The notes under the pieces are model-generated. The model did not search any database. It was not told the origin of the DNA and was given only the letters and a program-made list of their open reading frames with translations. A DNA stretch of 63,532 nucleotides, counting the filler, from Octopus bimaculoides (lineage: Eukaryota), in NCBI RefSeq assembly GCF_001194135.2. It is 6 parts of 6 records of this genome, joined end to end, with 100 filler letters (N's around TTAATTAATTAA, not from the genome) between each part and the next. Parts side by side here need not be neighbours in the genome. Positions count along the whole stretch, not along the records: positions 37,153 to 47,654 come from NC_069009.1; 5 more parts are not named here. One strand, given 5' to 3'. Shown in pieces: positions 38-47,984 of the stretch. Made by a program: the position numbers and the translations under genes. How positions within the stretch are numbered: the first letter of the stretch is position 1; the number at the start of each line of letters is the position of its first letter.

Positions 38-968
38 TATTTATATTGTATGTGTGTGCGTTTGCATGTGTGTATGCATATATGTATCTATGCATACATA
101 AATATATATATTTGTGTGTATATATATATGTATATGTATACGTTATATATATGCAGACACACAGGTACACAAACACACGCACACATGAACGCACACACAA
201 GCACACAGAAATACACACACACACAAGCACATACAAGACACACACACACACATATATATATAAATTGAATTTGTTCCTTTTCCTTCTTTTTCATTGATTG
301 TTCGCATACACACATTCACATACGCAAACAATACACACAAATAATACACACACACACACACTTCATAGTTTTAATTTCTCGTTAGTTTTCTTCACATTTG
401 TTCCATTTTCCTTCTCTGTTGCTTGACATTTATCGTTGGAATTGTCTCATTTCGAAGATCGTGAGCTGTTTGAAAATGTGTAATGAATCCGTAATAATAC
501 TGATTCTCTACCATTAAAACTCTTCCTTGTTGTTCTTGTTCTTTTTGTTGTTGTTCAGGATCTTGTTGCGGTAGTTGATTTTGTTACCAGTGTTGCTGTT
601 CTCGTCGTTTTCGTTGTCGTCGACTTCGTTGTTTTAATTATTTATGTGCAGTTGTCGTCATTATTGTTGGTGTTGTTTTGTTTTGTTTTTTTTTGGTTTT
701 TATTTTTAATTGTCGTTGTCATCGTTGTTGTTGTTGTTGTTGTTCTTATGTTTATTGATTGCCAGGAACGGTTGATTTCAAAATGTACAACAACGAACAT
801 AATTGCTCGTCCACAATAGCCAAGAATATATTTCTTCAAAACCGCAACGAATATTATCTCACAACCATTAGAGAAAATTAAAATTTCATTTTATTCAAAT
901 TTTTCTAATTTTTTTCATAGTTTTCAGATCGTATCATCATCACCATCATCATCAGCTGCTGTTGCTGC

Positions 969-1031
<63 letters not shown>

Positions 1032-1971
1032 TGTTGTTGTTGTTGTTGCTGTTGTTATCTTATTACTGCTCTTGTTTGGGGGTCTTTTTTGCATTCATGT
1101 TTGGCTGATGTTTCTCTCAGTAAATTAATATTTTAAATAGTGTATATTAAACAAACGAAACGTTGTTTGAATGTTGTAGTTGTTGTTAGTGGTGGTGTTT
1201 TTCTTCTTTTTCTTCTTCTTCTTCTTCTTCTTCTTGTGTTGACACTTTACCGGCACTGAACGAACAGATCTATGGTCTAAAGTATTTCACCCGTGACCAT
1301 TCCAGGTCTTCAACAGACGTATGGCATCTTGGAGCAGAGTATCTAAGACGATTCAACCTGCCCTTAGCTTACAATGTGTGCTATAATGGAGATATGTCTA
1401 GGTGTTACAATTAAGTTCTGGTTAAATAGTGATTTACTATTATTCTCTTCTTTGTAAGGAAAATATGAAGGTACTGGTCTTCTGATTAATGATCAAAGAA
1501 CTATGAGACACGTCAGCATAATCGGCATTGTTTTCCAGAGTACAAAGCGGATAACTAACTATCTTGACATCTGTTTAAAGTTTCACACCGAAATGCTTAA
1601 ACTGTATATTAATTCCTTTGAATTTATCGTGTGTGTGTGTGTGTGTGTCTGCGCGCGCGTGTCTGTGTACACTTATATATGCACACACATGCATGCATAT
1701 ATATATATATATATATATTAGAAAAAATAATAAGATACTCAGATATCTGGATGGTTGTACATTTACAGATTTTTATTATTATGTCATATGTTTTATAAAT
1801 ATTAGCGCTTGCCCCTATTCTTGTAGGTTCTTCAAATAGGTGCAAGTGCTAATATTTATAATACATGTGACATATTAATAACAATCTGTAAATGTACAAC
1901 CATCCAGATATCTGAGTATCTTATTATTTTTTCTAATATATAATTCCTGTACATCACCCCCAAACCTTCCA

Positions 1972-38178: not shown

Positions 38179-41100
38179 TTATTTATCATAATGAAAGAAA
38201 GCAAAAGATTGACGTCCAACAATAATTCCAAAAACCATGATAGAATTTTCTGAAACATCAAAACCAAGAACTTGGACGACTTCATTGTCATCACCACTGA
38301 GGACTAAATATTTTGGATTATATTCAAGTGTTGACATTTCAATATCTTCAGATGTTTCCTCTTTAATATGTCGAGGTACTCGGAAAATATTGTTTTGTGA
38401 ACCTGTTATATAAACACATTTACCCTTTGTAATTAGACGAGGTCTTTGAAAATTAAAGACCAGATCAGTACATTTTTCTTCTCTTCTTATCCTCCTCACC
38501 AATGACTTTTCCCTGAACCATTCCACAAGACAGGAATCAATCCCCCATTCAGACTCCTCCTCCTTCATCTTCTCCTCCTCCTCCTTCATCTTCTCCTCCT
38601 CCTTCATCTTCTCCTCCTCCTCCATCTTCTCCTTCCTCACAACAACAACATCACCATAAGATGTGACTCCTACATCATACACACCTGCATCTCCCTCCAA
38701 CCTTCCCTTTCTCCTCGTCTTCCCATGACACACTTCATCTTTACACTTCCCATCTTCGATATCAACCACAACCACATAATAAGAGTCAAAGATGTCGGGG
38801 TCTTTGCAAATGTAGTAATACTTGTTGTTCTTCCATATTCTTTTGTATTTCTTGTCTCTCTCTTTTTGAGTTATGTCTCTAATATAATGACCACCACACA
38901 CGAGTTGACTGTTGTTGTATTTATAAATTGTGTTGTAGTATTTCTCAGTTCTGATGGTTTTTAAACAACAGAGATCCCTGTTGAAGACCATCATTTCTCT
39001 ACCAAAGGTGACAATGAAACATTCATCTTTCCACTGACATATGTCCAGTGGTGGTTGTTGTTGTTGTTCATGTTGAAGTATGTCCCCTGTTGTTGTTCTG
39101 ATTAATGTGACACTTTCTCGAAACATCAACACACTCACATTCTCATCTAACTTAATTAGTTTATTCTTCCAGTTCCTAATGTCACAAAAATCATAATTAA
39201 AAGGTTCCTCGAATTCAGGAATAGAAAGAGGGACCATTGCTGTTCTATATGGAAGTCTCCTCACTGATATTTCATCAATTCTTGAATTACTAATTTCCGC
39301 TATGTAATTACCACATCTCACCTTTAATCTACCTTTACCAATTATTTCACCTGATTTACCTCTTCTTCCTCCATCTCCATCTCCTTCACTGTATTTCAGT
39401 TTATTAATTAATTCATTACTGGATATTTCCTTGTTTGTTTCAGATGTAATGGAAGGGAAACAACGACCAGAATCAAGATTTAATAACGACATAGTTTCCA
39501 GAATGTTCACTTGGTCCCCATCAATCTTTATGCAATGACATTCAATCAATTCAATATGTACACACCAGTAAATATGTCCCACTTTTCTCCATATTACACC
39601 ATAAGGGACGAGACTTGGCCAAACTTTAGATTTCTGCAAATTTTTTCCATTCAGTTGAAATATTTGTTTTCTTTTAGGAACTGTAGCCATTATGTCTCTT
39701 TCTGGTGTAAAACACACACCACCAACTAAACTTCCAAAATTTCTGAGACATAGCAACTCACCGTCTTCATCAAATATTTTAACATTTCCATTATTGGCTT
39801 TTTCACACACAACTGTCTTTCCTTTATCAGAGATATCAATATCTTTTACTTGAACAGAACATTCGTCTGTTTGTAAACGAGGAACCAGGAAGCTTTCTCG
39901 ATTCAACATAAACAAGCCTTCAACATACAATTCATTAATTCTCCAGGACGTCTTGGGCTTTGCAACAAACCTTGGTCCTTTACAGTTTATACTGAAGAAA
40001 TCTACTGCACCTTTATAAATTCTTTTATTTAAAAATATTCTCTTGTATTCCCCAGTCTGGGTCAAACATAAAATGTCTGAACGTTCAAGAAAACCTAAAT
40101 AAGTCTCCCACTGATAACCAAGGTACAAAAAACTGTCATCAATTGCCATCCTGTCTTCATTCGTATAACTTTTCATGTAGTGTCTAAATGAATGTGAATA
40201 TTGACCATCACGGTTGAAGAAAATGATGAATCTTCTGTTTAAGACAATGATGACATCGTCAGCAGTAACATTAATATCCTGGATGTCATCAGAATAATTT
40301 CCACATTCATCTCTCTGTAATAATGGTTCAGGTATGTCTATTTGTTTTATTTCATTCACACTCGAATGCATTTCATCGATATCAACAAAATACAAATGAC
40401 ATCCACTAAGCCATTTACTACAAACCAATTGATTGTTTGATAAAGAAGCCACACAATAATATTTATTTCTTGTCTGGTAAATTACGAATGACAATGGAAA
40501 TTCCACTTTTAATGTCAAAAGTTGGCATTTATTTTCATCTTTCGTAATGACCAGTGTGTTTGACTGCCATCGACACATTTTAACATAGCCATAAATATTC
40601 ACTTGGATAGAATCCAAAAGTTGACCATCCAATGTGAATATCACAATGCTTTCATTATCCTCGTTCCATCCTGCAATTAGATTATTTTCAGTAATTACCA
40701 TATGACTAATAAACATTCCTTCTTTATCTCCCAAATGTTGAGTGAGAGGAATATGTCTGGCTTTATCAGAAACTGTCAGATCCTGCAGATATAATGTAGG
40801 AGACAACATTTCACTGACACAAATGTTTCTGGAATATACATCAACCAGGTCAATATAATTATTAAGTTGATTATTTGTAACGAGATCATTAACCAACAAA
40901 TTATGATCGTTTATAGCAAACATACGGCTGTTGTCTATTAGAGAAACAGACGTTTGGTCAATAGATCCACCGTAAAGATTGGGGGGACGTTTCACTTGGG
41001 ACATTAAAATACTGGGGACCATCTTAATTCTACTAACATTATGACAACTACTTTTACCATCACGAAGATGATGCAGATGACTCCCACCAATAATGAACAC

Positions 41101-43791
41101 AGCTTCTAGCATGGACAGCTCAATTCTACCATCACTCCTACTACTACTACTACTACCATCACTCCTACTACTACTACTACTACTACCATCACTCCTACTA
41201 CTACTACCATCACTCCAACTAATACTACCATCACTCCTACTAGTACTACCACCACTACTACTAATACTACCATCACTGCCACTACTCTGACGACGTGCAC
41301 CACCATGACCACCACCATCTATTCTAGTGTTGTACTGAAATGCTTTTCCCCTAGTAACAATTAATAGCTTTTGTGTTTTCTCGTCTATTGATAATGATTT
41401 CACAGGTAAAGGGATATTAATTGTCTTAATTGTTTCAACTTGATTATAATAATTGATGGCTAAAATATCTAAATGTGATGGTTTATCACAGTAACAAACA
41501 ATTTTACATTCACCCATCTTACACATCCGTACATAAGGCTGACTTAATGATACACTTCTCACTGTCTTTGATAGGTTTCTGATGACCCTTAATTGTTTCT
41601 GTAGGGGTAATGTGACACCTATTTGATTAGAATCCCATCGACATATATCTGTAGCTGAAGATGGCAGAGATAATCTAGACACAATGTCTCCTTCATTTGA
41701 AATGTATAACAAGCAATCATGGTTGATGTCGGACACCACCAACTGTCCATTTGCCAGAAGACATATTTCACCAATGACAGCCTTTTCATTCTCCTTTTCT
41801 TTGAGTCGTACATTTAGATTTCTGATATAAGAATTTTTTGTGTGTAAACAACAGCAAGACGACTGGTCCTGATACTTGTAAAGAAGAACTCTGTTGAGTT
41901 GAGTGTCCGGTAGATAAACAGTTCCTTGGAAAACAGCAATGTGAGGGTGAACAAGGAAAGGCAGTTTCCCCTGCCATTTCATTTCTCCATATATATCATA
42001 ACATATCAGAATAGAGTGTCTCTTGAAGAGGACATAAAAATAAACATTATCAGAGTAGATGTGATGAGGGTAGCCATAGAATGGAAGGTATTTTTGAAAA
42101 AGTTCTTCACCGCATGTGGAATAAAATACCATTTTATTTTCGCTTCCATCTAGAACTACAAAATTAATTGGAGTTGCAGCAATGGTGACATTATAATGTT
42201 CCAGAGATATTCTTTCTATAATGTCAACTTTGTCCTCCTTGATCAATAGAATATGGATCTCATTTTTGTTTTCAGTGGTGGTCACAGCTAAACACTTATT
42301 TGATACAATATGACATATTTTCATGTAATCAGTTTGGACCTTTATTAAAGGGCCTTTTCTTAGTTCAGGACAGGTGATATACTGAAATCCTTTCATTTCA
42401 CGATAAAATACCAGGAATCTGTTTGTGTTTATTCTAGAATAGAAAGAAGGAAGCTCAAGGAGAACTAAATTATTTTGGTTAATTATTTCCTCATTATCAG
42501 TGAATAATTGGGCTTTTTTGTTTCTGTAAATTATTAATATAGAAGATGTAGACATAGGTAGAATATTTTTAATGTTGTAGAAATCCTCAATATCAATATA
42601 GTCTTTCAAACTGGGGGTATGTAGCTGGTGGTTGTATGACATTTTGGGCCAAAAGTCTTTATTTATTTGAATGGCATGTGGTTTGCCAAAATAATCTGTT
42701 ACCAAAATGGTATCTTTACCAACAGAAATAGAGCGACATTTTTTGCCAATGTCTCTCTTTGTCATAGCACCTTTAGCCGAAATCTTATAAATAATTTGTC
42801 CCTGGAGGACATAGAAATAGCTTTGGTACAGAGAGATTTTACTTGGGAGGTGCAGAGAATGGGTCTCTATCTCCCATAACTGTTGGCCATCCATATTGTA
42901 ACAGATTACTCTGTTGATACTGGAAAATGTAATTAAAAGTATATTCTGGACACCTACAGCAATATCTGTAGGCATTTCTTGGGTGATGAATTCATACTGA
43001 ATTTTATTACCCTCCCAATCAATTCGGTACACAGTCTTACCAAACATTTCTACACCTATAAGTGTAGAATGTCCCAAGTAAGCAACCAAATATAATCCCA
43101 ACTGTATTCTTTTAATCTTGAAACTTGTGGGGCTGATTAAAAGAATTGTTCTTTGGAAGGGGAGGGTTGTTAGAACCATGTCTTTACCAATTCTGGTGAA
43201 ACTGGTGACAGAAGATGGACAATGAATATCATTTCTGTCACCGTCTCTTGTCACACAACATATTGTCATACAATGGCGGGAAAAGGTTACCACTCCTACA
43301 TGTGTGACAATAATATCGGATATTATTGTGCTTTGGTCAAATTCTTCTCCAGATTCCTCGATCTTTACTTCTTTGATCACAACTGGCCAAAGAGGCCGAA
43401 ATTTTGTCGTTACTTTTGGTGGCTCAATTGTCTTGTGTTTATCTAGTAAAATATTTCTCTGTAAATAGTATTCCAGGAACAATTCTAGTTTTCCAAAAAT
43501 AATAAATTCTTGATCGTTATTTTTGTTAATGTCTTCCATCAAAATTTCTATTTTCTGTGTAAAACCTTTTAGAAAAGTATTTTCATCCATTCCTATACTT
43601 TTTAAAAAAGTACATATTTTTTCCCGAGAATTTATCAACAAATTAATTTTGTCTTCATATGCATTGAATCTGGTATAAAATATTTTTTTGTCAAAAACAT
43701 TTCGTCTTCCCATTATTTCCCTTGTTTCATGGTCTCCTTTATGACTTTTTTGTTTTGTTGTTGACTGAGATGAAACTCGTTTCCTTGACAT
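38179..43791 (-). CDS. Giant single-exon ORF (at least 1870 aa): N-terminal helical/coiled-coil-like segment plus about six tandem diverged NHL/TRIM-like beta-propeller modules; probably 5'-incomplete
   Basis: Uninterrupted 5.6-kb ORF with complex sequence in AT-rich DNA. Recurring blade motifs: IxDIxV..G, (T/L)DICxW..(I/V)xVT(L)P, Y..I.....(L/I)VC, and (Y/F)xxDG(Q/E)LL. The frame stays open for 26 more codons upstream (DSTKRNEDGVAHQKYRYGKDDGSRRE) to the gap edge at 43871. Confidence 0.88.
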   Translation of the reverse strand: MSRKRVSSQSTTKQKSHKGDHETREIMGRRNVFDKKIFYTRFNAYEDKINLLINSREKICTFLKSIGMDENTFLKGFTQKIEILMEDINKNNDQEFIIFGKLELFLEYYLQRNILLDKHKTIEPPKVTTKFRPLWPVVIKEVKIEESGEEFDQSTIISDIIVTHVGVVTFSRHCMTICCVTRDGDRNDIHCPSSVTSFTRIGKDMVLTTLPFQRTILLISPTSFKIKRIQLGLYLVAYLGHSTLIGVEMFGKTVYRIDWEGNKIQYEFITQEMPTDIAVGVQNILLITFSSINRVICYNMDGQQLWEIETHSLHLPSKISLYQSYFYVLQGQIIYKISAKGAMTKRDIGKKCRSISVGKDTILVTDYFGKPHAIQINKDFWPKMSYNHQLHTPSLKDYIDIEDFYNIKNILPMSTSSILIIYRNKKAQLFTDNEEIINQNNLVLLELPSFYSRINTNRFLVFYREMKGFQYITCPELRKGPLIKVQTDYMKICHIVSNKCLAVTTTENKNEIHILLIKEDKVDIIERISLEHYNVTIAATPINFVVLDGSENKMVFYSTCGEELFQKYLPFYGYPHHIYSDNVYFYVLFKRHSILICYDIYGEMKWQGKLPFLVHPHIAVFQGTVYLPDTQLNRVLLYKYQDQSSCCCLHTKNSYIRNLNVRLKEKENEKAVIGEICLLANGQLVVSDINHDCLLYISNEGDIVSRLSLPSSATDICRWDSNQIGVTLPLQKQLRVIRNLSKTVRSVSLSQPYVRMCKMGECKIVCYCDKPSHLDILAINYYNQVETIKTINIPLPVKSLSIDEKTQKLLIVTRGKAFQYNTRIDGGGHGGARRQSSGSDGSISSSGGSTSRSDGSISWSDGSSSRSDGSSSSSSRSDGSSSSSRSDGRIELSMLEAVFIIGGSHLHHLRDGKSSCHNVSRIKMVPSILMSQVKRPPNLYGGSIDQTSVSLIDNSRMFAINDHNLLVNDLVTNNQLNNYIDLVDVYSRNICVSEMLSPTLYLQDLTVSDKARHIPLTQHLGDKEGMFISHMVITENNLIAGWNEDNESIVIFTLDGQLLDSIQVNIYGYVKMCRWQSNTLVITKDENKCQLLTLKVEFPLSFVIYQTRNKYYCVASLSNNQLVCSKWLSGCHLYFVDIDEMHSSVNEIKQIDIPEPLLQRDECGNYSDDIQDINVTADDVIIVLNRRFIIFFNRDGQYSHSFRHYMKSYTNEDRMAIDDSFLYLGYQWETYLGFLERSDILCLTQTGEYKRIFLNKRIYKGAVDFFSINCKGPRFVAKPKTSWRINELYVEGLFMLNRESFLVPRLQTDECSVQVKDIDISDKGKTVVCEKANNGNVKIFDEDGELLCLRNFGSLVGGVCFTPERDIMATVPKRKQIFQLNGKNLQKSKVWPSLVPYGVIWRKVGHIYWCVHIELIECHCIKIDGDQVNILETMSLLNLDSGRCFPSITSETNKEISSNELINKLKYSEGDGDGGRRGKSGEIIGKGRLKVRCGNYIAEISNSRIDEISVRRLPYRTAMVPLSIPEFEEPFNYDFCDIRNWKNKLIKLDENVSVLMFRESVTLIRTTTGDILQHEQQQQPPLDICQWKDECFIVTFGREMMVFNRDLCCLKTIRTEKYYNTIYKYNNSQLVCGGHYIRDITQKERDKKYKRIWKNNKYYYICKDPDIFDSYYVVVVDIEDGKCKDEVCHGKTRRKGRLEGDAGVYDVGVTSYGDVVVVRKEKMEEEEKMKEEEKMKEEEEKMKEEESEWGIDSCLVEWFREKSLVRRIRREEKCTDLVFNFQRPRLITKGKCVYITGSQNNIFRVPRHIKEETSEDIEMSTLEYNPKYLVLSGDDNEVVQVLGFDVSENSIMVFGIIVGRQSFAFFHYDK
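38555..38632 (-). repeat. In-frame GA-rich minisatellite encoding (EEEKMK)n inside the last propeller module
   Basis: Plus-strand repeats of ctcctccttcatctt; translation KEKMEEEEKMKEEEKMK... Confidence 0.9.
41128..41290 (-). repeat. In-frame (AGT)n-based minisatellite encoding SDGSSSSSR-like repeats inside the giant ORF
   Basis: Plus-strand units ccatcactcc(ta cta)n; translation SSGSDGSISSSGGSTSRSDGSISWSDGSSSRSDGSSSSSSRSDGSSSSSRSDG. Confidence 0.9.
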
Positions 43792-44187
43792 TTCTCTCCT
43801 TGAACCATCATCTTTCCCATATCTATACTTTTGATGGGCAACTCCATCTTCATTCCTTTTTGTTGAGTCCCNNNNNNNNNNNNNNNNNNNNNNNNNNNNN
43901 NNNNNNNNNNNNNNNNNNNNNNNNNNNNNNNNNNNNNNNNNNNNNNNNNNNNNNNNNNNNNNNNNNNNNNNNNNNNNNNNNNNNNNNNNNNNNNNNNNNN
44001 NNNNNNNNNNNNNNNNNNNNNNNNNNNNNNNNNNNNNNNNNNNNNNNNNNNNNNNNNNNNNNNNNNNNNNNNNNNNNNNNNNNNNNNNNNNNNNNNNNNN
44101 NNNNNNNNNNNNNNNNNNNNNNNNNNNNNNNNNNNNNNNNNNNNNNNNNNNNNNNNNNNNNNNNNNNNNNNNNNNNNNNNNNNNNNN

Positions 44188-44328
44188 GTAACTTAGCGGT
44201 TTGGCAAAAGAGACCGATAGAATAAGTACTAGGCTTCCAAAGAATAAGTCCTGGAGTCGATTTGTTCGACTAAAGGCGGTGCTCCAGCATGGCCACAGTC
44301 AAATGACTGAAACAAGTAAAAGAGTAAC
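44188..44328 (+). mobile_element. SINE family B 3' part at the gap edge
   Basis: gtaacttagcggtttggcaaaagagaccgatagaataagtactagg..ccagcatggccacagtcaaatgactgaaacaagtaaaagag. Confidence 0.8.
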
Positions 44329-45567
44329 ATTTTGTTGGAATAAAAATGATTAGAAATAAGCATCTGGTTACAATCTATTTTAAGATGTATTAATAAGTTT
44401 CATTAATTACATGGAGTCTAAAAATTAGCAATAATTATATTCACTGGAAATGATATTTGCTCTCAACATCACAAAGTAATAATCATGTGTGGCTCAGATT
44501 TATTTAACATCTGTAAACCAATCCCCCCCCCACCTTGGAAGACATGGGAAACAAGAACTTTTGTTCTTGCAAAATGATTTTAGGTGAGCAATAAGAAGGC
44601 CGTCTGTCTGTAAAACAATGCTACAATATTTATTTTAGGAAAATAAAAATAAGAAATAAGTGGAAATTTTAACGGTGAGTGTGTTAAATTTTAAGGCACA
44701 ATAAGAAAATGACTCTCCCCAGATACAACAGAAAATGCTATAATAATATATTCATCTAACCCATGCTAGCATACAAAATCAGATGTACAATCAAACATAA
44801 GTAAACCTGTGTTTATACATTCATATGCTCTCATGCACACATAAGCACACACATGAGTGTGTGTGTGCATCTGGTGTTAGGAAGATCATCCAGCTGTAGA
44901 AATCGTGCCAAATCTTTCATCGGAGCTCAGCAAAGTCCTCTGGCTCACAAATTTAACAAATTTTAAATTTCACTTGCGACTTAGAAATCCACTGTAAACT
45001 ACTTAAAACGTGTATCCTTAGATGAACATTTCCATCAAATAGTTTTGACATAGTTATAACACAACTATACTTTATATTATATTCTGGAAATGAAATGTTT
45101 TACTTGTAATGTAACACTGTAAAATGTTTAAACAATGTCTAGTCTATAAAATGGTGTGTGAAAATAAAACAATGTCTATATAACAGGATATTTATGTTTG
45201 AAATAATTGTAATGAATGTTTAGCGATATAAATGTGTTGGTAAATTATGTGTCAAATAAATAAGTATCAGAAGAATATTATTTACCAGTTACTGGGTTTT
45301 GATTTCGGCTTGAAGTCTTTCTTTCTGAGAAATACTCTGTGTGTCTGCTTCGTTCGAATAGCAATGAAAATATGGCAACAGTTAAGAGGATACTTACAAT
45401 ATATCAGGGAGTAGTAGGCATTGCCTCCTCATGTGTGTATATATACATTTGTGTGTGTATACACCTATATATATCTATGTATATATATATATAGACGGAT
45501 ATACACATATTTATACATAAATGTCTGTGTGTATATACATATATATATATGTGTGTGTGTGTATAGG

Positions 45568-45868
45568 TACAGGAGTGGCTGTGTAGTAAGTAGCTTGCTT
45601 ACCAACCACATGGTTCTGGGTTCAGTCCCACTGCATGGCACCTTGGGAAAGTGTTTTCTACTATAGCCTTGGGCCAACCAAAGCCTTGTGAGTAGATTTG
45701 GTAGACAGAAACTCATAGAAGCCTGTTGTATATATAAATATATATATATAGATATATATGTATGTGTGTGTATACCCCCCACAACATTACTTGACAACTG
45801 ATTCTGGTGCATTTAGGTCCCTCTAACTTAGCAGTTCAGCAAAAGAGTCTGATACAATAACCACTTGA
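45568..45868 (+). mobile_element. SINE family B
   Basis: caggagtggctgtgtagtaagtagcttgcttaccaaccacatggttctgggttcagtcccactgcatggcaccttggg. Confidence 0.8.
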
Positions 45869-45924
45869 AATTTGTTAGAAATAATAAACAAATTTTCCTA
45901 AAATAACATAGAACCTTCTCATAA

Positions 45925-45979
<55 letters not shown>

Positions 45980-46810
45980 NNNNNNNNNNNNNNNNNNNNN
46001 NNNNNNNNNNNNNNNNNNNNNNNNNNNNNNNNNNNNNNNNNNNNNNNNNNNNNNNNNNNNNNNNNNNNNNNNNNNNNNNNNNNNNNNNNNNNNNNNNNNN
46101 NNNNNNNNNNNNNNNNNNNNNNNNNNNNNNNNNNNNNNNNNNNNNNNNNNNNNNNNNNNNNNNNNNNNNNNNNNNNNNNNNNNNNNNNNNNNNNNNNNNN
46201 NNNNNNNNNNNNNNNNNNNNNNNNNNNNNNNNNNNNNNNNNNNNNNNNNNNNNNNNNNNNNNNNNNNNNNNNNNNNNNNNNNNNNNNNNNNNNNNNNNNN
46301 NNNNNNNNNNNNNNNNNNNNNNNNNNNNNNNNNNNNNNNNNNNNNNNNNNNNNNNNNNNNNNNNNNNNNNNNNNNNNNNNNNNNNNNNNNNNNNNNNNNN
46401 NNNNNNNNNNNNNNNNNNNNNNNNNNNNNNNNNNNNNNNNNNNNNNNNNNNNNNNNNNNNNNNNNNNNNNNNNNNNNNNNNNNNNNNNNNNNNNNNNNNN
46501 NNNNNNNNNNNNNNNNNNNNNNNNNNNNNNNNNNNNNNNNNNNNNNNNNNNNNNNNNNNNNNNNNNNNNNNNNNNNNNNNNNNNNNNNNNNNNNNNNNNN
46601 NNNNNNNNNNNNNNNNNNNNNNNNNNNNNNNNNNNNNNNNNNNNNNNNNNNNNNNNNNNNNNNNNNNNNNNNNNNNNNNNNNNNNNNNNNNNNNNNNNNN
46701 NNNNNNNNNNNNNNNNNNNNNNNNNNNNNNNNNNNNNNNNNNNNNNNNNNNNNNNNNNNNNNNNNNNNNNNNNNNNNNNNNNNNNNNNNNNNNNNNNNNN
46801 NNNNNNNNNN

Positions 46811-47122
46811 TAACGTGCAAGTGGCTGAGCACTCCACAGACACGTGTACCCTTAACGTAGTTCTCGGGGATATTCAGTGTGACACAGAGTATGACAATGC
46901 TGACCCTTTTGAATTACAGGCACAACAGAAACAGGAAGAAAGAGCGAGAGAAAGTTGGGGCGAAAGAGTACAGCAGGGTTCACCACCATCCCCTGCCGGA
47001 GCCTCGTGGAGCTTTAGGTGTTTTCGCTCAATAAACACTCACAACGCCCGGTCTGGGAATTGAAACTGCGATCCTATGACCGCGAGTTCGCTGCCCTAAC
47101 CACTGGGCCATTGTGCCTCCAC
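46811..47122 (-). mobile_element. tRNA-derived SINE family D (5' part)
   Basis: The head ggaggcacaatggcccagtggttagggcagcg..gcagtttcaattcccagaccggg has A- and B-box-like motifs; the body is shared with 48856-49160. Confidence 0.78.
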
Positions 47123-47321
47123 ACACATACATTAATACATATGTGCACATACATGCACAAACACATACATACATACAAACACACACATAACAATCAGTCT
47201 AGTTTGTTGTGTATTGTTGGTCTTCAAATTTGACAATCCTCAATGTTTATTGTATACGAATGCTTTGTGTATTGTTTTTGTTTTCCTGTACACTGTACAC
47301 TGTACACTGCTTTATTCTTTC

Positions 47322-47375
<54 letters not shown>

Positions 47376-47984
47376 ACCACTCTCTCTCTCTCTTTCTCTC
47401 TTCAAATAATCACTCTGAAATCATTTCATCGTTGTTCTTTTGATTTCGTTTCCACTCCCTCCCTCTCAACAACTAACAATCCACTTTTGTGTTACAATGG
47501 CCAAGGTACCTATAGACGAAAATAAATATAATTGAAACCTCTTTGCAAACTGATAACACATTCATTTACAGATTCCGGGTCATCTGAAGTGTTTTGCTTT
47601 TAAAACCCTTAGAAACTTTCGTTTTTCTAATAATTTTGCATTGTTCAGTATAAANNNNNNNNNNNNNNNNNNNNNNNNNNNNNNNNNNNNNNNNNNNNTT
47701 AATTAATTAANNNNNNNNNNNNNNNNNNNNNNNNNNNNNNNNNNNNNNNNNNNNTTTTTTTTTTGTTTCTCAATCCCTTTTGATCGAACTCCCCCCTTTT
47801 TTCCCTTCCTACGATCCCTTTTGATCGACACATCCCTACTTTTTTTTTCCTTCCTCCTCCCAAAAAGAAAAGCACTACATTGTTGAGCCCTTTGTGGCTA
47901 ATAAAAGAAATCTATCTATCTAGTTATCTATCTATCTATCTATTTATCTATCTATCTATCTTTGTCATCCATAGGCTATAATAA

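Follow-up and report, generated by a model that had tools for sequence, protein, structure and literature searches.

NHL domains are six-bladed beta-propellers that bind ligands, either RNA or proteins, and they are known as single C-terminal ligand-binding domains in the TRIM-NHL regulators and a few other proteins. In Brat, LIN-41/TRIM71 and Mei-P26 the top surface of the propeller binds RNA, and other NHL proteins bind protein partners. Several six-bladed propellers along one chain are known from receptors of the LRP4/LRP5/LRP6 type, which are extracellular and possess a signal peptide, EGF spacers, a transmembrane helix and blades with a YWTD motif. Here we describe a locus of Octopus bimaculoides (assembly GCF_001194135.2) in a window of 63,532 nucleotides, by which we mean the whole joined stretch of DNA that was analysed, filler included. 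The locus lies in the piece derived from NC_069009.1 (positions 37,153 to 47,654 of the window, along which all positions are counted). We consider it likely that it is an intact, single-exon member of a tandemly amplified and octopod-restricted gene family, and that it encodes a protein of about 1,900 amino acids (aa) without a RING domain, in which a helical N-terminus is followed by about six, roughly six-bladed, NHL-type propellers. By default, the protein is regarded as cytosolic.

The TRIM-NHL proteins (TRIM2, TRIM3, TRIM32/Thin, TRIM71/LIN-41, Brat, Mei-P26 and a cuttlefish protein, P0063, discussed below) possess a propeller unit homologous to that of the octopus protein. However, the latter has neither a RING domain nor a B-box nor a recognisable TRIM-like coiled coil, it carries about six tandem propellers instead of one C-terminal propeller, and it is encoded by a single giant exon in a family that is expanded and fast-evolving in octopods only. 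With the LRP-type receptors it shares the arrangement of several propellers, here roughly six-bladed, along one chain, which may likewise form a multivalent platform, and LRP4 appears at rank 42 among the Foldseek matches of our structural models. In contrast to these receptors, Pfam finds no EGF or LDLR class B (Ldl_recept_b) domain in the octopus protein, the N-termini of its homologs are hydrophilic, and no transmembrane segment is present (maximum Kyte-Doolittle value of a 19-residue window 1.49, below 1.6), in agreement with what an original prediction, made from the DNA sequence alone, had stated. WD40 scaffolds such as DDB1, EML1/4, the IFT-A subunits WDR19/IFT140 and Utp21 also use consecutive propellers (two or three) as a scaffold. 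They are the best Foldseek matches of the whole models, with TM-scores (template modelling scores) of only 0.12-0.31, as expected for multi-domain queries, and 7-12% identity, but the octopus protein has no WD40 sequence signature and its sequence affinity is to NHL.

The ORF (open reading frame) on the minus strand comprises 1896 sense codons without a stop and is terminated by TAA at 38179-38181. Translation thereby confirms the long frame that the original prediction had recognised, with the correction that its upper coordinate, given as 43871, is two nucleotides out of frame: the upper coordinate in frame is 43869, and the frame remains open as far as the adjoining run of N (43872-44187). 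Together with its two flanks, the ORF is collinear with 10.21-10.25 Mb of the Octopus vulgaris chromosome OX597841.1 at 88-92% nucleotide identity, and the gene model at that locus, P0007, is its positional counterpart. The first visible in-frame ATG (43791) gives a product of 1870 aa. Homologs begin with MEDQTENT..., and the ORF of the O. vulgaris counterpart reaches 40 codons further 5' and has a conserved Met 21 codons upstream of aa 1 of the window product. Because the aligned homologs and the O. vulgaris counterpart put this Met about 21 codons upstream, we place the start inside the N run, which most likely hides the true start (MEDQTENT...) together with about 21 N-terminal codons. The window product is absent from the protein collections searched, and an exact look-up of the ATG-started 1870-aa product returned no record, probably because the assembly gap truncates the gene at its 5' end. 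The ORF has a GC content of 0.32-0.38, and that of the flanks is lower. When neutral change was simulated with the observed substitution spectrum and the 11.9% divergence from the O. vulgaris counterpart, a mean of 26.7 stops arose in the whole ORF and of 12.7 in its C-terminal half; none is observed, and the long open frame can therefore not be attributed to chance. All of the 13 indels between the two ORFs are in frame.

The two halves of the protein were each aligned with 35 homologs (alignments A1 and A2) and subsequently modelled with AlphaFold. The model of aa 1051-1896 (mean predicted local distance difference test, pLDDT, 68.6; predicted template modelling score 0.65) consists nearly entirely of short beta-strands in groups of four, and the model of aa 1-1050 contains helices at 48-139 followed by all-beta units. 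Units A, B and D each have 23 strands, a number compatible with six blades of four strands in which one strand is shared for closure, and 16 strands are modelled in C ahead of a disordered insert. The first part of propeller C is the best conserved module of the protein; segment C2, behind the insert, presumably represents the last two or so blades of the same propeller. Foldseek searches of the Protein Data Bank (PDB) with both models retrieved multi-propeller proteins only, all at probability 1.0 and with E-values of 1e-13 to 1e-20, among them IFT-A subunits, ciliary WD proteins, DDB1, Utp21, EML1 and LRP4. The tandem propellers proposed originally are thus recovered in the predicted structure. 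The six modules proposed alongside them roughly match the beta-rich AlphaFold units (Table 1), although their boundaries and number are approximate, and the partition of the last ~555 aa is ambiguous.

Affinity to NHL propellers became visible at the level of profiles. A profile for which only the modules C, D, E and F of octopus proteins were used (A4) matches the NHL domains of TRIM2 (E 1.6e-14), TRIM3 (5.6e-14), Brat (1.8e-9), TRIM71 (8.5e-9), Thin (5.4e-7) and Mei-P26 (2.2e-6) in the PDB. These E-values are sums of several weak blade matches; the match to TRIM71 is a single stretch of 71 positions that spans two blades. Apart from one repetitive WD40 protein, to which we return below, the natural proteins with a significant A4 match in the PDB are exclusively members of TRIM-NHL, six different ones. 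A second profile (A3, aa 691-1740), searched against 1.84 billion representative proteins, found only 31 at E <=0.001. One remote match is P0063 (CAE1315789.1) of the cuttlefish Acanthosepion pharaonis (E 1.3e-6), in which Pfam identifies RING, B-box and NHL (NHL 29.1 bits against a cutoff of 20) and whose C-terminus matches the NHL crystal structures of TRIM2 and TRIM3 at E about 1e-11; P0064 (NHL 35.2 bits) and P0066, similar to P0063, are further remote matches. Among PDB sequences, A3 retrieved only the NHL domains of TRIM71, TRIM2 and TRIM3, with E-values of 0.19-1.3 that are not significant alone. In hhalign comparisons, module D aligns with the NHL domain of P0063 from end to end of the propeller (96.3%, E 1.9e-9, ~208 columns), and both have the motifs GICxW...VVTLP and Y..VAS....LVCS. 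The first part of module C matches P0066, P0064 and P0063 at 95.8, 91.3 and 90.8%, respectively, and module F matches P0064 at 78.8%.

Our data demonstrate homology between the propeller unit and the NHL propeller at the C-terminus of TRIM-NHL proteins from cephalopods and other animals, and we conclude that the modules are NHL-type propellers, as the original prediction had assumed, too diverged for the 28-residue repeat model of Pfam. Nevertheless, despite the descent of its propeller from the TRIM-NHL kind, we do not class the protein as a TRIM, because it has no RING or B-box and its predicted helices show no detectable homology to the TRIM coiled coil. Pfam finds no RING in homologs whose N-termini are complete or in the window product, of which the gap conceals only ~21 residues. 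Neither the window product nor the homologs have a zf-B_box match, although P0063 has one, and the probability of hhalign matches between the N-terminal region and the coiled coils of P0063 and P0066 is below 1%. WD40 (PF00400 or a related propeller model) is likewise without a Pfam match at E up to 10.

The internal repeat is seen only at profile level and when modules C, D, E and F are aligned de novo with MAFFT: comparison of the protein with itself by BLASTP (word size 2, E 10) gave no off-diagonal match. With cleaned alignments, hhalign links C to F at 93.5%, C to D at 83.8%, D to E at 72.3% and D to F at 51%, and a profile self-comparison matches aa 706-1085 with 1061-1373 at 93.4%. A merged profile, to which D, C, E, F and three TRIM-NHL-like proteins were added step by step at 90% or more for each merge, also detects A and B (Table 1). 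From only the first ~100 residues of each of the four modules (C, D, E, F) in several paralogs, MAFFT alone aligned N-x-L-V-x-D-x-N...F...G-x-L-L, D-I-C-x-W...V-T-x-P...Q-L and Y...I...Q-L-V-C across all four, and the five second-blade strings listed originally are all present at the places given for them (Table 1). The first blade of module E, KDIDISDKGKTVVCEKANNGNVKIFDEDGELL, is the most NHL-like one. C2 and F2 (aa 1775-1896) showed no link to the NHL profile by hhalign. A seemingly much stronger relationship of A with F (hhalign 99.7%, E 6.5e-27) and with E (97%) turned out to be an artefact of misaligned rows of the chimeric gene model P0001; the A-F signal was gone once P0001, P0002, P0010 and all low-identity rows had been removed.

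The protein belongs to a family with dozens of paralogs in octopods only. The first protein search returned 38 matches, all from Octopus, 45-84% identical and mostly 1,600-1,900 aa long; all of them are 'uncharacterized', nearly all are without a Pfam domain, and 21 of the 38 are on OX597841.1, a chromosome of 29.19 Mb. Full-length relatives among the 1.84 billion proteins come only from O. vulgaris, O. sinensis, O. bimaculoides and Argonauta hians, so the original view of a lineage-specific protein without a named gene holds: no named family emerged from Pfam or among the homologs. Public octopus annotations have since 2015 listed the family only as 'uncharacterized protein' with no domain. 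XP_014783180.1 (LOC106878473), LOC106868082, the CAI97xxxxx entries ('Hypothetical predicted protein') and GAB1597371.1 are true members with the same architecture and 45-84% identity along their whole length, and none of these Octopus and Argonauta entries has a domain annotation or a name. Single-exon homologs are P0013 (O. bimaculoides CM046629.1, 1783 codons) and P0005 (O. vulgaris, 1870 codons). The window protein differs from its relatives in a Ser/Gly/Asp insert of greater length and in a Glu/Lys insert. The former (aa 850-955) is built on an in-frame trinucleotide repeat (TRF array 41126-41286) whose sequence is present in only 2-3 of 38 homologs and of which 75 codons are missing in the O. 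vulgaris counterpart; the latter is likewise an in-frame repeat (EEEKMK tract). The lengths of both arrays vary among paralogs, and against the O. vulgaris counterpart they differ by 75 and 20 codons, respectively.

The ratio of non-synonymous to synonymous substitution rates (dN/dS), determined pairwise against the positional O. vulgaris counterpart, is 0.75 for the whole ORF and differs strongly along the protein, with 0.43-0.54 in modules A to C2 and values around 1 from module D onwards (Table 1). If codons are split by predicted secondary structure, dN/dS in the N-terminal propellers is 0.33 for strands and 0.73 for other positions, and the corresponding values in the C-terminal half are 0.68 and 1.63. 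For the ordered loops of the C-terminal half (297 codons) it amounts to 1.53, with a bootstrap 95% interval of 1.01-2.38 (YN00: 1.83). Our data reveal that the beta-strand cores are under purifying selection and that the reading frame is strictly kept, whereas in the C-terminal propellers the loops evolve no more slowly than silent sites. Judged from these pairwise estimates, conserved cores with fast loops would be better explained by binding surfaces under diversifying selection than by simple decay. The original prediction had named, together with a lack of expression, a dN/dS near 1 with frequent stops as evidence against itself; here dN/dS is near 1 in the C-terminal half and well below it in modules A to C2, and the window ORF has no stops. 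Some caution is required with regard to dN/dS, because dS against the paralog P0005 (window 38182-43869 versus L003 10001-15613) is strongly mosaic, rising from 0.085 (module E) through 0.67 (module A) to 1.1 (N-terminal region), which suggests gene conversion or recombination among paralogs.

Several observations weigh against the interpretation of the locus as an intact gene for a chain of NHL-type propellers. Pfam (hmmscan, E up to 10) recognises no domain in the 1896-aa product, and NHL (PF01436) is absent there and in five homologs; a single-sequence phmmer search of the PDB found nothing relevant, with one chance-level match to EAF3 (E 0.21). The profile A4 also scores a hyper-repetitive WD40 protein of the cyanobacterium Nostoc and designed derivatives of it through many weak blade matches, so that part of its signal must be attributed to a generic blade motif. 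The quality of the models is modest (mean pLDDT 52.8 for aa 1-1050, with aa 850-1050 unmodelled), the ~40 strands of the last ~555 aa, roughly 10 blades, leave their partition and the boundary between E and F ambiguous, and the start codon is not visible in the window sequence. Relaxed constraint would equally lead to a dN/dS close to 1 in the C-terminal half, and the loop value above 1 comes from one pairwise comparison with a wide interval that gene conversion among paralogs can distort. On the one hand, the propellers might not be NHL-derived at all, but generic or WD40-like blades that converged on a common motif: the top Foldseek matches are WD40-type multi-propeller proteins, A4 has its best PDB score with the repetitive WD40 protein, and the NHL model of Pfam is silent. 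This we regard as improbable, given that the WD40 model is silent too, that the other significant natural matches of A4 are all NHL domains from six TRIM-NHL proteins, that the stretch shared with TRIM71 extends over two blades, and that module D aligns over the whole propeller with a RING/B-box/NHL protein and has motifs of several blades in common with it. Moreover, modules of ~215-270 aa with 23 strands fit six blades and not the seven typical of WD40, and queries of 850-1050 aa with several domains bias the Foldseek ranking towards long multi-propeller targets. On the other hand, multi-copy, intronless giant ORFs, some of them in gene models fused to DUF4371 or C2H2 zinc fingers and with flanks rich in SINE-like repeats (resembling short interspersed nuclear elements), could belong to a selfish element, that is, to a transposon- or virus-derived ORF spread by transposition and not by tandem duplication. 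We consider this the least probable of the alternatives. Pfam scans of the window product and five homologs detect no domain of a mobile element, be it a transposase, a reverse transcriptase, an integrase, a capsid or any other, and a structure search of BFVD returned only generic WD40/PQQ propellers of at most 14% identity; a match to a known transposable element or viral ORF would have counted against the original prediction. Both flanks are collinear between species as in an ordinary locus, the copies form a cluster on one chromosome and, with 45-85% identity, are neither dispersed nor near-identical, and the fused models look like annotation chimeras.

Alternatively, the locus might be a decaying or functionless copy produced by birth-and-death evolution, either a recent pseudogene or a fully relaxed frame that has not yet been hit. 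The overall dN/dS of 0.75, with ~1 in modules D to F2, could be read in this way, and so could the absence of the window product among annotated proteins, the degraded and fragmentary copies adjoining paralogs, and the state of the O. vulgaris counterpart: at the P0007 locus one frameshift in an A7 run (GGAAATAAAAAAATAGAC, L002 ~29440-29480) splits the ORF into 1145 and 716 codons, and the annotation bridges it with an 'intron', which leaves P0007 short of ~160 residues. This frameshift may reflect either genuine damage to the gene or an error in the assembly of the homopolymer. A decaying copy is nonetheless hard to reconcile with the ~27 stops expected (13 in the C-terminal half alone) against none observed, with 13 of 13 indels in frame, with strands markedly more constrained than loops in both halves, and with the low dN/dS of modules A to C, and we give it little probability. 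The regulatory role of the closest characterised relatives deserves more weight. These relatives are RNA-binding TRIM-NHL regulators, the N-terminal propellers of the octopus protein are moderately conserved, and the protein could thus serve a housekeeping or developmental function, for example translational repression of mRNA as in Brat, LIN-41 and Mei-P26, instead of diversifying recognition. We regard such a function as rather unlikely, although less so than the three preceding explanations, in view of dozens of paralogs with birth-and-death turnover, of loops in the C-terminal propellers with a dN/dS of ~1 or higher, and of a restriction to octopods that is atypical of conserved developmental regulators.

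If the interpretation as an intact chain of NHL-type propellers is followed, the family may have arisen from a TRIM-NHL-derived propeller that was multiplied within one exon, with loss of RING and B-box, and the whole gene would afterwards have been amplified to dozens of copies, mostly on one small chromosome. By analogy with known NHL domains, each propeller is probably a binding module whose site would be formed by top surface and loops, and the chain as a whole probably a multivalent binding platform, the C-terminal propellers of which could diversify to track fast-changing ligands. Without an E3 domain of its own, the protein might act by sequestering, by scaffolding or by recruiting partner factors. 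The most attractive specific reading is a role in defence against viruses or transposons. It is plausible because of the dynamics of the family, and we put it forward as a tentative possibility; its main functional alternative is a regulatory RNA-binding role. The loop dN/dS above 1 in the C-terminal propellers would be compatible with the role in immunity that had been suggested originally. More speculatively, and in our estimate with clearly lower probability, octopods could possess a new kind of recognition repertoire, encoded in the germline and made up of dozens of proteins that lack RING and bear about six NHL propellers each, with most of the genes on one small chromosome. The loops of their C-terminal propellers would be positively selected and gene-converted, and their targets would be fast-evolving, for example RNA or proteins of viruses or transposons. 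If true, this would be an intracellular, multivalent counterpart of the innate immune receptor families based on leucine-rich repeats or on TRIM proteins.

An architecture of about six NHL propellers without an E3 module was not found in Pfam, in PDB sequence searches, or in full-text literature searches for octopus and cephalopod NHL/TRIM proteins. The domain type is known, but its arrangement here (about six NHL propellers in one exon, no RING or B-box, amplification in octopods only) is undescribed in the literature searched. The TRIM-NHL origin, the octopod restriction with clustering on one chromosome, and the strictly kept frame with a loop dN/dS above 1 make the family tractable. For cephalopod biology it is a concrete candidate system of lineage-specific recognition or regulation, and also a case in which the multiplication of a domain within one exon and the subsequent amplification of the gene can be put to the test. 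There is also a lesson for annotation: pipelines based on Pfam leave such genes blank, and the window copy was likely missed altogether owing to the assembly gap.

Table 1. Features of the propeller gene and its surroundings (aa, position in the 1896-aa product; percentages given for 'merged profile' and 'hhalign' are match probabilities; dN/dS against the O. vulgaris counterpart).
Feature	aa	Window position	Strand	Evidence and remarks	dN/dS
ORF, 1896 codons + TAA		38179..43869	minus	5' end enters assembly gap; homologs P0013 and P0005 single-exon	0.75
N run (assembly gap)		43872..44187	no strand	sequence; homolog N-termini; O. vulgaris ORF extension	
N-terminal helical region, four predicted helices	48-139	43453..43728	minus	AlphaFold pLDDT 45-58, low confidence	
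Propeller A, 23 strands, ~6 blades	186-401	42667..43314	minus	pLDDT 62-86; merged profile 94.1%, E 1.3e-7	0.49
Second-blade motif TSFTRIGKDMVLTTLP	222-237				
Propeller B, 23 strands, ~6 blades	433-665	41875..42573	minus	pLDDT 58-85; merged profile 94.3%, E 1e-7	0.54
Propeller C, first part, ~4 blades	699-847	41329..41775	minus	pLDDT 37-74; hhalign against TRIM-NHL proteins; bears TDICRWDSNQIGVTLP	
Second-blade motif TDICRWDSNQIGVTLP	740-755				
Disordered Ser/Gly/Asp-rich insert in module C	850-955	41005..41322	minus	pLDDT below 30; occupancy 0.07	
Segment C2	956-1050	40720..41004	minus	family identity 0.75-0.81; pLDDT below 35; no significant profile match	
Propeller D, 23 strands, ~6 blades	1054-1318	39916..40710	minus	pLDDT 70-91; hhalign against P0063 NHL 96.3%	1.14
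Second-blade motif KMCRWQSNTLVIT	1097-1109				
Module E, 12 strands, 3 blades	1340-1461	39487..39852	minus	AlphaFold; hhalign against P0066 92.9%	0.90
Second-blade motif GVCFTPERDIMATVP	1384-1398				
Low-confidence loop between E and F	1464-1540	39250..39480	minus	pLDDT 23-40; family identity 0.78-0.86	
Modules F + F2, ~25 strands	1541-1895	38185..39249	minus	AlphaFold; hhalign; bear LDICQWKDECFIVT and YYNTIYKYNNSQLVC	1.07 (F), 1.09 (F2)
Second-blade motif LDICQWKDECFIVT	1608-1621				
Glu/Lys-rich repeat insert	~1745-1775	38554..38638		in frame	
Second N run of the piece		45981..46811			
SINE-like segment		44188..44327		11 copies, mostly 77-94% identical	
SINE-like segment		45572..45860		13 copies, mostly 77-94% identical	
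SINE-like segment		37456..37503		8 copies, mostly 77-94% identical	
SINE-like segment		46811..47123		2 copies, mostly 77-94% identical	

Some further observations concern the loci of the family. The family is concentrated on one small chromosome; the sequences concerned are OX597841.1 (29.19 Mb) in O. vulgaris, CM046629.1 (11.99 Mb) in O. bimaculoides and a contig of 15.1 Mb in O. sinensis, and P0007 and P0005 are only ~90 kb apart on OX597841.1. Beside the intact P0005 and a C2H2 zinc-finger gene there is a short fragment (L003 10-318, equivalent to aa 192-295), and a truncated, degraded copy with 41-83% identity and frame changes (L003 20137-22950) is found near P0005; these adjoining remains indicate birth-and-death turnover in the cluster. 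The public models P0001 (2526 aa), P0002 (2053 aa, with C2H2 zinc fingers) and P0010 (2120 aa, with DUF4371) look chimeric, as if two family copies, or a family copy and a neighbouring zinc-finger or DUF4371 gene, had been fused. The flanks of the gene consist largely of multi-copy SINE-like repeats, whose copies were counted over 92.5 kb of three homologous loci. ARAGORN and Rfam called nothing over the piece, including the segment 45572-45860, which opens with a tRNA-like head.

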